NCBI GenBank assembly: GCA_026936335.1
Contig: JAPMXV010000003.1
Coordinates: 248,001-312,000, forward strand
From: Mantamonas sphyraenae STR306
Lineage: Eukaryota; Protista; CRuMs
Direction: 5' to 3'
DNA: 64,000 bases
Shown here piece after piece: positions 50,391 to 54,989 of the stretch (the stretch's first letter is position 1; every line of letters starts with the position of its first letter). Under the pieces are notes generated by a model, which did no database searches, was not told where the DNA came from, and worked only from the letters and a program-made list of their open reading frames with translations. Both the position numbers and the translations under genes were made by a program.

Positions 50391-51806
50391 TTACACTTCC
50401 ACCTCTACATTGCTACTGGTGGGTTCCAACTCATCACTTGCCCCACTTCCCCCACTGCTGCTGCTGCTGCTGCTGCTATTGTCCACCCGTTGTCTCTTGG
50501 CATCCTCCTCCCCTCCTTGTTGCTTTCCCTCCTCCACAGTGCTTTCCTCGTCCCTCTTTCGCTTGCCTCCTGCTGTCTGCTCTGCACCATTGGCACCGTC
50601 CCGCGCCTTCTGCTTGTTGTGCTTGTTCTGCTTGTTCTGAAAGTGTTGCGCCACAAACGCCTCCAGCTCCTCCTGGGACACGGCGTCGTTGATGCTCTGT
50701 CTGATCTTGGTAAAGATGCCCTTGTCATTGGGCGTGTCCTTGTCGTGGCGAATCCGCTTGAAGCGCCATCCGCCCGTGCGCATGGCAAACCCTCCATCCT
50801 CAGTGGGCACCTTGGTGGGCCACTGTGGATCCTCCACACACTCCAAAATGAGCGATTGCACCCGTTTGGCATCCATGTTACGCAGGGCTGCCTCCTCCTC
50901 CTCCGTGAACGACACGTAATCAAAAAACTCGGAAATCCCCTGGTTGCCCAGTGTCAGGTAGTGAAACTCGTGGCGCCCCTGCATGATGGTGCCCACCCCA
51001 AAGTCCACTGTGTTTTCGTCCGCCGGTTTCCACTTGTACATCTCTGCACAGGTGCCGGGTTTGTACGGCAGTTCCACGGGGGTCAGGATCAACCCGTCGT
51101 TCTTGTGCTTGAGGTTGGGAATGATGTCCTTGAAGAACACGGGGATGTCACCAATGGTCTTGAATGCCTTCATCTGCATGTGTAAGCTCCCTTGTGGTTC
51201 AAAGCCCTCGCCTGAGAGGGCCTTGCGTGCTCCTTGTTGTCTGCCAAACACATACGAGTTCAGGTTGCCCAGACGAGAGCTCAGGTTCTTGTTGACCAGC
51301 GAGAATCCCTCTCTTGCCATCATGTCGAATGCCAGATACACCCACTGGTCGCCCTCTTGCACGAGTTCTCCGTCCAGAAGGGTGCCGTGTTGGGTCTGCT
51401 TCCACAAACTCTTGTCCTTGCTACCATCCTGGGGTAGTACCACGTCCACCATGCGCATGTCCATGTTGCGACCCACCAGAAACACGCCCGAGAAAATCTG
51501 GTTTGCTCGCGAGCCGGAGGAGGAGGAAGAGGAGGCGGCTTGGGCTTGCATCGCACGTCGCGCCTCTTCCGGCCAGTTGATGCTCATCATCAGGTAACGC
51601 ACGCCGTCCGTCTTTTCGGAAACCCAGTACGGGTTGGTTAGCAACGTTTCAAAGTGTTCCCGCATGAAGGAGGCCGGTTGCGAGCCCGGAAACTCGGTCC
51701 TGATCCCAGGCGCAGGACACAGCACCTTGAGCGGATTCAGCACGCGGTCGCGCAGGAACTTGGTGCGCACCTCCAAACCAGGCAGCGGTGGGGGCACTTC
51801 GTCCAT
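50391..51806 (-). CDS. mRNA-capping guanylyltransferase (Ceg1-type, stand-alone)
   Basis: FPGSQPASF, motif I VSEKTDGVRY, TLLDGELV, YLAFDMM, HKNDGLILTP, MYKWKPADENTVDF, WRFKRIRHDKDTPN. Confidence 0.93.
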   Translation of the reverse strand: MDEVPPPLPGLEVRTKFLRDRVLNPLKVLCPAPGIRTEFPGSQPASFMREHFETLLTNPYWVSEKTDGVRYLMMSINWPEEARRAMQAQAASSSSSSGSRANQIFSGVFLVGRNMDMRMVDVVLPQDGSKDKSLWKQTQHGTLLDGELVQEGDQWVYLAFDMMAREGFSLVNKNLSSRLGNLNSYVFGRQQGARKALSGEGFEPQGSLHMQMKAFKTIGDIPVFFKDIIPNLKHKNDGLILTPVELPYKPGTCAEMYKWKPADENTVDFGVGTIMQGRHEFHYLTLGNQGISEFFDYVSFTEEEEAALRNMDAKRVQSLILECVEDPQWPTKVPTEDGGFAMRTGGWRFKRIRHDKDTPNDKGIFTKIRQSINDAVSQEELEAFVAQHFQNKQNKHNKQKARDGANGAEQTAGGKRKRDEESTVEEGKQQGGEEDAKRQRVDNSSSSSSSSGGSGASDELEPTSSNVEVEV

Positions 51807-52024
51807 GGCCGGTTGGTGTGGAGACTTGTTTTGGAATGCACTGCTGTGCGCAAATGCAAGCACACTTTTTTGAAACCCCTTTGCGTCGAGGCAGGAACCC
51901 ACACACGGACCCCTTCCGTTTTCCTCTCCCCACGACCAAACAAGCAACCAACTCGGACTCGCTACTGTGTGCGAACCCACTCTCTCAACTTCTCTCTTTC
52001 TCTTACCGAACAACTTTGCTTTCG

Positions 52025-54989
52025 ATGACACGCACAGCCGTGTTGTTGCTCGCTTTTGCGCTGCTCGCCTCGCTGGTCGCAGCGCACCAACACCCCATGG
52101 ACATGGCAGACGAGGAGGTCGACGATATCCTTCCTTCTGACTGGTCCGAAAAGGTGCCCGATGAACTGCACTCTGGCCACGTACGTTGACACAACACCTG
52201 TCAGGACTCAGAGAGAGGGAAAAAGCAGAGGGCGTTTTTCCCCGGGTGGAGATTATTGTTCTTTTCCCGAAGCGTCCACTGACACTAAAACACGGTGCCA
52301 CGCGTGACCCACAACCTCACGCACACCCACAAACACGCAAACACAGCAAGGCGACGGGTGTGTCCACGAACAGGTGATCAAGAACCTGCGCACGACGCAC
52401 AAGCCCGTGTACGCGCCGCAGGAGTACGATACGAACGCGGCGGCAGCAGGAAACCTGACGGCGGCCGGGTCGCGCAAACTGCTCCTCAGCGGCGCCAACT
52501 ACATCCGGGTGTACTTTGACACGTCTGCGATTGACAACTACGATGCCAAGGCATGCAACAGTGTGGGCCAGGTGCTGACGACGATGAACCCGTCGTACAC
52601 GTGCCAGCAGAAGGACATCATGGACAATTCCAAACGCTCGTACCTGAAGAACACCCTGCTGCCTGCAGCCAAGGCATGGATCGAAGGAGCCTTCAAGCTT
52701 CAGCGAGTGTCGGGCAACCTCAAGTTCAGCAGCAGCACCGATTGCTACCAGGCACCCGTGTCGTCGGTGTACTCCAGTTCCGGGGTGCCCAACGCCGACC
52801 TGGTGCTGTTTGTCACGGGCCGTCCCACGTCGGGTTCGGCCCTGGCCTGGGCGGCCAACTGCCGTCTGGATCAGAACAAGAGGCCCGTGGCGGGACACAT
52901 CAACTTTGGACCGGCCAACCTCAACCCAGACATGTCTGTGCGTTCGCAGCAGGTGGGAGTGGCCATCCACGAGATCGGCCACGTGCAGGGTTTCTCGGGC
53001 TACTTCTTTGACAAGTTTGTGGATCCCAACACCAAGCAGGTGTTGCCCAAGAGCCAGGTGTTGAAGGAGGGCACGCTGTGGTCGTCGCAGCACCAGGTCA
53101 AGTGGGTGCAGACACCCAAGGTGCGTGAGGAGGCAGGCAAGTTCTTTGGCTGCTCCAACACCCCCGGGTTGCAACTGGAGGACGGCGGCACGTCGGGATC
53201 GGCAGGATCGCACTGGGACAAGCGTCTCATGCAGGACGACTACATGAACCCCACGGCCATGTGGAAGCCCGTGTACAGCCGCATCACCTTTGCCTTTTTC
53301 GAGGACACCGGCCACTACGAGATGGACTATGGCAGTGCCGAGGCGTCCAAGTGGGGCCAGGGCATGGGCTGTGACTTTATGACCAAGAGCTGTGGCCAAT
53401 GGCCCAGCAGCTGGGGCTACACCTGTTCCGACCCCAACGCCAAGCCTTGCACGGGCGACCGTACGGCCAAGGGGTACTGCTCGCTGGTCACGTACAGCGC
53501 AGACCTGCCCTCGTACTTCCAGTACTTTAGCAACCCCAAGATGGGCGGTGGTGACAAGTTTAGCGACTACTGTCCCCTCGTGCGTGCGTACAGCAACGGC
53601 GACTGCACAGACACGGGCAACAGCGGACCCAGCGCAGGCGCCTTTGGCGAGAACTACGGCGCCGATGGCATGTGTGTCATGGGCAGCACCATGAAGAGTG
53701 GCTACGTCAACAATGGTGTGCCTCGTGCCTCGTGTGTGATCAAGCGTTGCAGCAACGGCGTCCTGCAACTCAAGGTGGGCTCATCCTGGGTCACCTGCCC
53801 GGCTTCAGGCGGCTCTGTGTCTGCCCCGTCGGGCTTCACAGGCTCCATCACCTGCCCGACCTATGCGCAGGTGTGCACAGGCTCCTCCTCCTCGTCGGGT
53901 GGAGGCAGTAACAACAATGGTGGTGGAAGTGGCAGCAGCTCCCTGGGCGCATACCTGAGCCCGTCGAGCAGCGTGTCTGTGCGCAGCGGACCGGGCACGT
54001 CGTACAGTCTGCTGTGGACGGCGGAGCAGTCGGACGTGTTTATCAAGCTGTCCACGGTGGGCGATTGGGTGCGTGTGCAATCGCTGGGAGGACCCAACGA
54101 CGGCAAGAACGCATACGTGCACGGCGGCTACCTGACCACGGTGGCACTGGTGTGTCCCTCGTTGGATGGACTCAACATGCGCAGTGGGCCGGGCACGTCG
54201 TACACGCGCATCTTTGAGGCCGGCCCCGCCGATTCGTTCCTGGTGTTGAGCAGCAGTGGGTCGTGGAAGCGCCTGCGTGCTGTGTCCAGCCCTCGCACGG
54301 GCACGTACGCATGGGCCAGCAGCTCGTACCTGCGTTCGTGCTCGCCGGCACCCAAGTCCACGCCCACGGGAAGTGGATCGGGAAGTGCCACCAGCTCCAC
54401 GGGCGTGTACTGGATCTCACAGGTCAACAGCATCAGTGTGGAGCGTGTGGACCAGACCAGCTCTGGTTCCTTCTCCACCCTCTCGGGTACGGTGGACAAG
54501 TTCTGCCTGATGACCCTGGAGAACAGGTGGCCCTCGGCAGGCGAGTACGAGGCTGGCAAGAGTGTGTTCTCTCGCGCACGCAAGTACCCGCACTTTCTGG
54601 TGGCCAAGGACAGCTCGGGACGCACTCGCATCGCCCAGTTCCTGCCCCTCAACAAGGCAGGCAGCATGTTCTCCAGCAGCTCGGCCAACAACGACGGTGT
54701 CATCCAGGTCATGGTCGGCGCAAAGGCAAGCTCCCCGTTCACCTCCAACGACTGGTCCCTCAAGGAGGCCGTCAAGGGTCTCTACAAGGCTGTGTCGGAT
54801 GCCACCGGCATGCCCATCCGTGTCGACTCGCGCGTCAAGTTTGTCCAGGACGGCGCCTACGGACGCAACGCCCCGCAGCGTCTCAGCTCTTCCGACTACA
54901 GCAGCGTCTCGGGTATCATTGGTCGCCAGCATGTGCCTGGTGAGACCATGTGGGACCCGGGCATGATTGACCCCCAGCGTCTGATGTGA
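52025..54989 (+). CDS. Secreted leishmanolysin-like (M8) metalloprotease fused to two SH3b domains and a degenerate Amidase_2-like domain; 2 exons
   Basis: Signal peptide, pro-region CVHE, HEIGH zinc motif, LEDGG..GSHWDKR, Met-turn DDYMNP, EDTGHY..WGQGMGCDF, DYCP; two V/MRSGPGTSY..W..V..GY/AW..YL repeats; C-terminal PHF..QFLPL..N..IQV..GRQHVP..WDPG. Confidence 0.9.

Follow-up and report, generated by a model that had tools for sequence, protein, structure and literature searches.

We describe a eukaryotic gene in which a secreted, zymogen-type protease of the leishmanolysin family (MEROPS M8) is predicted to be joined, in a single polypeptide, to a complete cassette of two SH3b domains followed by an Amidase_2-like domain. 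The gene lies at positions 52025-54989 of a 64,000-nucleotide stretch of Mantamonas sphyraenae STR306 (NCBI GenBank assembly GCA_026936335.1, contig JAPMXV010000003.1, positions 248,001 to 312,000 of the forward strand). This whole stretch is called the window below, and positions are counted from its first letter. The amidase-like domain appears to be catalytically dead and is therefore referred to as a pseudo-amidase. The reading that we favor, and hold to be reasonably probable, is that the cassette stems from a dead paralog and that its SH3b and pseudo-amidase domains would dock the protease on the peptidoglycan of bacteria.

The protease and its gene

The M8 domain scores 330.6 bits with Pfam Peptidase_M8 against a cut-off of 21 (E 2.3e-98), matching profile positions 63-526 of 529, and its alignment to leishmanolysin (1LML) covers 455 residues (E 1.6e-56). 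In that alignment HEIGH (52968-52982) pairs with HEMAH of 1LML, the third zinc-ligand His lies in SHW (53208-53216), where GSAGSHW pairs with GSAGSHI, and the Met of the Met-turn (53244-53246) is kept, with DYM opposite ELM. The closest M8 proteins in the databases are only ~37% identical to that of the window. The genome itself holds at least seven other M8 genes. In six of these seven the protease is followed by IPT/TIG domains, from one to seven in number, and the seventh shows M8 alone. The window M8 is the sister of one of these own-genome genes, an M8-TIGx7-EGF gene (Shimodaira-Hasegawa-like approximate likelihood ratio test (SH-aLRT) support 99, 50% identity); because of this placement, its sequence identifies the M8 half as an endogenous eukaryotic paralog in which the usual stalk has been replaced. 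As read from the domain content, the M8 genes of this genome form a modular family, in which only the window gene has a predicted wall-binding cassette. The seven other M8 genes (L013-L019) are spread over contigs C58, C44, C59, C69, C34, C3, and C63 of the scanned genome (G000), and one of the TIG-bearing genes adds EGF and disintegrin-like pieces.

The protein is encoded by a single gene on the forward strand with two predicted exons (Table 1). The frame of exon 1 runs into a stop at 52187-52189, just past a GTACGT donor (GT at 52181). In the list of open reading frames (ORFs) the long second frame starts at a GTG at 52374, with 22 further open codons upstream of it (893 amino acids (aa) without a stop). 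Of the in-frame AG acceptors, we prefer the one at 52345-52346, which is preceded by an AC-rich tract, over the other at 52372-52373. Exon 2 most likely starts at 52347 and not at the GTG, because a Cys-switch is encoded just upstream of the latter. The Cys and His of this switch are the invariant columns of the motif HxCxH[DE] in an alignment with six M8 homologs; the gene's own motif reads D-G-C-V-H-E, in which the first His of HxCxHD is replaced, and its presence depends on the 52347 acceptor. Kyte-Doolittle hydropathy, calculated in 19-aa windows over the joined protein of exons 1 and 2, confines the strongly hydrophobic windows to residues 1-8, and no internal or C-terminal segment of the membrane or glycosylphosphatidylinositol (GPI) type emerged from this count of the whole protein.

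An earlier reading of the letters alone (the original prediction) had proposed a signal peptide, a propeptide, an intact M8 core of eukaryotic kind, and the lack of a GPI or transmembrane (TM) tail. The analysis bears out all of these: the only strongly hydrophobic windows fall in exon 1, the Cys-switch aligns with those of M8 homologs, HEIGH, SHW, and the Met-turn all align with 1LML, the protease that accepted the modules is an endogenous paralog, and the C-terminus lacks a hydrophobic tail.

The SH3b pair and the fold of the C-terminal domain

The protease is followed by a Gly/Ser-rich linker and by two SH3b repeats, both of which had been predicted and both of which are upheld. Over the whole protein, Pfam SH3_3 scores 53.8 bits in two stretches against a cut-off of 27, and the best sequence relatives of this part in the cassette-region search are bacterial. 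The structural model of the whole cassette (SH3b-SH3b-pseudo-amidase) has a mean predicted local distance difference test score (pLDDT) of 83.8; with this model, Foldseek retrieves the tandem SH3b domains of YrvJ (B. subtilis), of Bacteroides NlpC/P60 proteins, and of the phiSM101 endolysin, and also Trichomonas vaginalis NlpC1/NlpC2 and CPF_0587 SH3. Two further SH3_3 matches above the Pfam cut-off lie elsewhere in the genome (G000:C34:695448-695606, L005; G000:C13:182066-182170, L007).

The C-terminal domain is harder to place by direct comparison. Pfam Amidase_2 (PF01510) matches neither this domain nor its two paralogs, nor anything else in the genome scan, so that the check proposed in the original prediction fails with that very model; NCBIfam gives no match to the domain either, and phmmer against the PDB returned chance matches only (E >0.3). 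A match was obtained with PHROG 17214 (endolysin, E 1.9e-6), and an exhaustive HMMER scan collected 284 relatives. When the window domain, its two paralogs, and 57 relatives were aligned, 22 of the 60 sequences matched PF01510, and others carried PG_binding_1, LGFP, or SLT. A profile of 134 family sequences finds the amidase XlyA in the PDB (E 3.7e-6), the His of the family's LHTTE aligning with a His of XlyA and its IQVE with the IGIE Glu. The same pairing of IQVE with IGIE is seen when the family profile is compared by hhalign with Escherichia coli AmpD (E 1.6e-5), an alignment that spans the central 70 columns only. The C-terminal zinc motif was mapped by motif spacing instead: G-H-x-H-x(5)-H-x-D-P-G (GHxHxxxxxHxDPG) has spacing identical to G-H-C-D-I-A-P-D-R-K-T-D-P-G of AmpD (GHCDIAPDRKTDPG). 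The corresponding zinc ligands of AmpD are H154 and D164, and its K162 has a catalytic role.

The AlphaFold (AF2) model of the C-terminal domain is predicted with high confidence (pLDDT 95.7; predicted template modeling score (pTM) 0.92), and the top 50 Foldseek matches are all Amidase_2 or PGRP structures. By VIA-align, the model superposes on AmpD with Z 16.0 and a root-mean-square deviation (rmsd) of 2.5 Å over 148 residues, on PlyP100 with Z 15.7, on AmiA and AmiE with ~15, and on PGRPs with ~13; 78 chains reach Z >=8, and among the 50 listed every one is an amidase or a PGRP. The animal PGRPs are thus matched in fold at a lower Z than AmpD and the endolysins, and no PGRP was matched at the sequence level. 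The clusters nearest to the domain in the ESM Atlas are from Actinomycetota and phages, a 'Lysin A family' among them, and the catalytically intact paralog described below shares 27-32% identity with annotated endolysins of Brevibacterium and Streptomyces phages. Judged by these sequence comparisons, the domain belongs to a divergent clade of Amidase_2 whose prokaryotic relatives are endolysins of Actinomycetota and of their phages; its assignment to Amidase_2 rests on transitive homology and on the predicted fold. The motif family named in the original prediction, namely Amidase_2 of actinobacterial and phage lysins, was thus well chosen, and the structural comparison suggested there for the last ~200 aa returned the Amidase_2/PGRP fold.

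Loss of the catalytic and metal-binding residues

At seven positions of the family (H41, E44, E108, H179, H181, H187, and D189), 114 of the 134 relatives read HEEHHHD, and the window copy reads MEMRHMD. Four replacements stand out, all of them listed in the original prediction and all of them real when set against the aligned relatives. A near-invariant zinc-ligand His has become Met (54510-54512, LMTLE), the catalytic Glu (E116 in AmpD, E90 in PlyL) has become Met (54711-54713, IQVM), a second zinc-ligand His has become Arg (54924-54926, GRQHVP), and the His at the position of AmpD Lys162 has become Met (54948-54950, TMWDPG). From the set of zinc ligands (His, His, and Asp/Cys), two of three are lost and the Asp alone is left (54954-54956). 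These four losses are the only ones among 16 positions conserved at >=90%, the other 12 being kept. With these four residues replaced, the domain is predicted to be unable to bind zinc or to act as a zinc amidase.

Sister cassettes and the probable origin of the fusion

Two more SH3b-SH3b-amidase copies are found in the same genome, both of them stand-alone (Table 1). One, on a different contig, has all catalytic and metal residues and keeps 36 of 36 clade-conserved residues; from its sequence, it is probably an active, secreted, endolysin-like enzyme of the protist. The other is dead, with D, V, R, A, and A at catalytic and metal positions and all three zinc ligands lost, and it is located on the same contig as the protease gene, ~58 kb upstream of it and ~6 kb before the start of the window. 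The three cassettes are collinear over their full length at 50-51% identity, the two dead ones sharing 51% over 336 aa with six gap positions.

A tree of the amidase domains pairs the two dead copies with each other (SH-aLRT 99) and places the intact copy as the sister of this pair (92). All three fall within a clade of 28 rows (SH-aLRT 99) on a long stem, which adjoins a group of 50 rows that were not typed individually; the family members that have a name and fall outside the clade are lysins of bacteria or phages. Three clade members or cluster-mates that were checked are located on eukaryotic metagenome contigs, near genes for Ras, RCC1, coronin, TFIIF-beta, and TLD proteins. A recent, private horizontal transfer of the cassette was considered and ruled out, as the clade also occurs on other eukaryotic contigs. 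The original prediction that the protease had recruited horizontally acquired modules fits their bacterial or phage endolysin ancestry, with the correction that the cassette is not a recent acquisition by this lineage alone.

Both dead copies carry H179R, which points to an inactivation that preceded the fusion, or at least the split of the two dead copies. From this shared change, the amidase was probably already inactive before or at the time of the fusion. The original prediction had the protease recruit the modules, with the amidase converted into a PGRP-like binder; the loss of catalytic residues stands, and it probably took place no later than the fusion. In the scenario that we favor, the cassette would have been copied from a stand-alone, already dead paralog on the same chromosome and fused to a duplicated protease of the M8-TIG type, taking the place of the IPT/TIG stalk.

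The eukaryotic clade is variable in its other modules, as some members have Chitin_bind_1 or Stig1 where SH3b would be. Instead of SH3b, the relatives P0013, P0165, and P0243 have either a hevein-type Chitin_bind_1 or a Cys-rich Stig1 domain; the contigs that encode them are eukaryotic or are short metagenome contigs. As far as the sequences tell, targeting modules have been swapped repeatedly within this clade. A further metagenome protein, P0024 (678 aa, Logan), has a C-terminal amidase of the eukaryotic clade that reads Y-V-G-R-H-G-D at the seven positions; it is a second, independent degenerate amidase of the clade, and its first 477 residues are without a Pfam match.

Genomic context and features

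The genome that was scanned comprises 25,061,354 bases in 78 contigs at ~59% GC; the published FALCON assembly of M. sphyraenae is reported with 25.06 Mb, 78 contigs, and 59.19% GC (PMC10492846). The same paper terms M. vickermani, like M. plastica, a bacterivore, and it mentions neither peptidoglycan nor leishmanolysin (PMC10492846). Bacterial contamination as the source of the gene is ruled out by the intron, the eukaryotic M8 domain, the neighboring genes for a capping enzyme and a leucine-rich repeat (LRR) protein, and the genome-like GC content. The capping-enzyme neighbor is listed as a mechanical ORF at 50391-52301 on the minus strand that starts at a GTG and covers exon 1 of the protease gene; this overlap is probably an extension made by the ORF list and not a real one.

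Table 1. Features of the protease gene and of the two stand-alone cassettes
Feature	Position	Strand	Basis and remarks
Exon 1	52025-52180	+	ATG, signal peptide (hydrophobic core of ~20 aa), acidic stretch; ORF and sequence
Predicted intron	52181-52346	+	GTACGT donor, AC-rich tract, AG acceptor; from sequence
Exon 2 (most likely start)	52347-54989	+	Open throughout: propeptide, M8, linker, two SH3b, pseudo-amidase; stop 54987-54989
Cys-switch-like motif C-V-H-E	52359-52370	+	Alignment with six M8 homologs
Peptidase_M8 (leishmanolysin) catalytic domain	52494-53885	+	Pfam E 2.3e-98; alignment to 1LML
Gly/Ser/Asn-rich linker	53880-53942	+	Translation
SH3b domain 1 (SH3_3)	53967-54137	+	VRSGPGTSY at 53979-54005; Pfam SH3_3 36.8 bits (own-genome scan)
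SH3b domain 2 (SH3_3)	54165-54332	+	MRSGPGTSY at 54177-54203; 29.2 bits singly
Second Ser/Thr/Gly/Pro linker	54342-54401	+	Translation; pLDDT <50 at cassette residues 145-157
Pseudo-amidase, predicted Amidase_2/PGRP fold	54390-54986	+	199 aa; predicted fold and transitive homology
Dead stand-alone cassette (L002)	1492-2529 of L002; G000:C3:240933-241970	-	SH3b-SH3b-pseudo-amidase
Intact paralog (L003)	~660-2091 of L003; G000:C4 ~91985-93415		Own signal-peptide exon, two SH3b, amidase

Novelty and comparison with known systems

The original prediction knew of no description of this architecture, and the searches agree. No protein combining PF01457 with SH3_3 or with the amidase family of the window was found in the whole-protein, cassette-region, and exhaustive domain searches; the cassette-region search for other fusions returned bacterial SH3b proteins only, none of them with PF01457. 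A protein atlas search with the exon-2 protein gave no usable match of the same architecture, and a further homology search for it yielded metagenome proteins only. In the literature, we found no paper that links leishmanolysin with SH3b, and in the one paper where both occur in a relevant context they are treated as separate proteins. We conclude that this is a new domain architecture made from known parts, the domestication of bacterial wall-targeting modules by eukaryotes being already known.

With leishmanolysin/GP63 (1LML), the protein shares the signal peptide, the Cys-switch propeptide, the HExxH motif with a distant third His, the Met-turn, and a Cys-rich C-terminal subdomain. It differs in having neither a GPI nor a TM anchor and in the SH3b-SH3b-pseudo-amidase that follows the M8 domain. 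With the Amidase_2 endolysins (Lysin A type), AmpD, XlyA, and PlyP100, on the other hand, the common features are the fold (Z 15-16, rmsd 2.5) and the motif frame LHTxEG, PHF, IQVE, and GHQHxxxxxHWDPG. Unlike these enzymes, the window domain goes unscored by Pfam, has two zinc ligands, the catalytic Glu, and the Lys-equivalent replaced, and is placed C-terminal to its SH3b modules within a protease.

The non-catalytic PGRPs (Drosophila PGRP-SA, PGRP-LC, and PGRP-SD; human PGRP-I alpha) offer a second point of comparison. They likewise have an Amidase_2 fold without catalysis (Z ~13), kept as a recognition module, a role that can be predicted for the window domain as well. The two have independent origins: the window domain is nearer to AmpD and the actinophage lysins than to animal PGRPs. 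PGRPs typically lose one zinc ligand, whereas four active-site residues are lost here.

A further parallel is offered by the NlpC/P60 peptidoglycan hydrolases of T. vaginalis, which carry two SH3b domains and were laterally acquired (6BIM, 6BIQ; PMC6299479, PMC10461829). Like them, the window protein is predicted to be a secreted eukaryotic protein with tandem SH3b domains of bacterial origin that is aimed at bacteria, and the tandem SH3b of the cassette model matches both 6BIQ and 6BIM. In T. vaginalis, however, the partner of the SH3b pair is an active peptidoglycan endopeptidase acquired along with it. In the window protein the co-acquired enzyme appears dead, and the active-type enzyme is the endogenous eukaryotic M8 protease.

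Proposed function and alternative explanations

If the cassette docks the protease on peptidoglycan, as we favor, the protein would act as follows. The signal peptide would send it into the secretory or phagosomal route, where the two SH3b domains and the PGRP-like pseudo-amidase would bind peptidoglycan, be it the stem peptide, the cross-bridge, or a muramyl-peptide. This binding would bring the protease to a high local concentration on the sacculi of bacteria that have been ingested or are close by; once activated through the Cys-switch, it would degrade wall-associated proteins. In this way it would complement true peptidoglycan hydrolases, for example the intact SH3b-SH3b-amidase paralog.

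Several observations bear on whether the dead domain is still in use. Neither dead copy has lost its open frame, indels between the two are few over the 336 aligned residues, and the fold-core residues P67, H68, Q83, R164, G175, G178, H181, D189, P190, and G191 are kept. Between the two copies, dN/dS by the method of Nei and Gojobori (NG86) is ~0.5 at a dS of ~1, which is near saturation, and the ratio is therefore weak evidence. Other observations also weigh against the proposal: each dead copy is changed at 11 of 36 clade-conserved residues (25 of 36 kept) and the intact copy at none of the 36, the terminal branches leading to the dead copies have about three times the length of the one leading to the intact copy, and M8 proteases cleave ordinary L-peptide bonds. 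Such changes may mean that the ligand groove has been remodeled or the ligand has changed in the dead copies. On balance, the sequences make it likely that the dead domain is retained under selection. For the PGRP-like binder of the original prediction, the fold is supported and binding to peptidoglycan is plausible, but many clade residues outside the catalytic set have changed too.

The same losses and long branches, present in both dead copies, could indicate that the cassette no longer binds peptidoglycan at all, either as a decaying remnant or because it has been re-purposed toward another ligand, for example chitin-like polymers, glycans on the surface of the protist itself, or a partner protein. 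The ease with which relatives in the eukaryotic clade swap their N-terminal modules (Chitin_bind_1, Stig1, SH3_3) fits such a change of use. We think this unlikely, as two dead lineages have kept their frames and remain collinear at 51% identity, the fold is confidently predicted, the dN/dS ratio and the structural core residues speak for constraint, and SH3_3 scores well above its Pfam cut-off. A different role for a binding cassette would be that of a sensor or opsonin, acting at the cell surface or in the medium, in which the modules recognize peptidoglycan in the manner of non-catalytic PGRPs and trigger or localize the M8 protease for signaling, prey capture, or defense. PGRP-SA, PGRP-LC, and human PGRP-I share the fold at Z ~13, the Cys-switch implies regulated activation, and the existence of a stand-alone dead cassette fits recognition that is independent of an enzyme; the protein, however, has no membrane anchor or signaling domain, and none of its features separates a sensor from simple substrate targeting, which leaves us doubtful of this role. 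The fusion itself might be an artifact of the gene model, with M8 and the SH3b-amidase on separate transcripts or parted by an unrecognized intron. The gene model is read from DNA sequence, and stand-alone cassette genes do exist in the same genome. Yet the frame is unbroken for 880 codons from the propeptide to the stop of the amidase, the junction is a Gly/Ser linker without a stop, an ATG, or a second signal peptide, the intact stand-alone paralog by contrast has a signal-peptide exon of its own, and, according to the assembly paper (PMC10492846), the contig is long and was built from PacBio data and polished. An artifact is accordingly very improbable.

Docking on peptidoglycan also admits a bolder version, which we regard as a long shot: a 'proteolytic lysin', in which the pseudo-amidase and the SH3b pair provide docking that is specific for muropeptides, the Cys-switch M8 protease becomes active while docked on the walls of living bacteria, and essential wall-anchored proteins are stripped off. 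If this were true, recognition and attack would be united in one polypeptide, a new kind of eukaryotic antibacterial weapon, and deep-branching eukaryotes would have evolved PGRP-like modules from phage lysins independently of animals.

Significance

Among the relatives gathered here, a clade of divergent eukaryotic Amidase_2 proteins comes to light that is at present overlooked by Pfam. In this clade, the predicted loss of Amidase_2 catalysis with retention of the domain would be an independent, non-animal case of the route that led to the recognition-type PGRPs. A single genome holds a natural series of an intact secreted cassette, a dead stand-alone one, and a dead one fused to a protease, which is useful for testing what the pseudo-amidase contributes. 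Should binding prove true, the cassette could serve as a modular tag for targeting peptidoglycan. For Mantamonas, the gene would show how a bacterivorous, deep-branching eukaryote of the CRuMs may build tools against its prey, by recombining a protease of its own with an endolysin cassette that it has domesticated.

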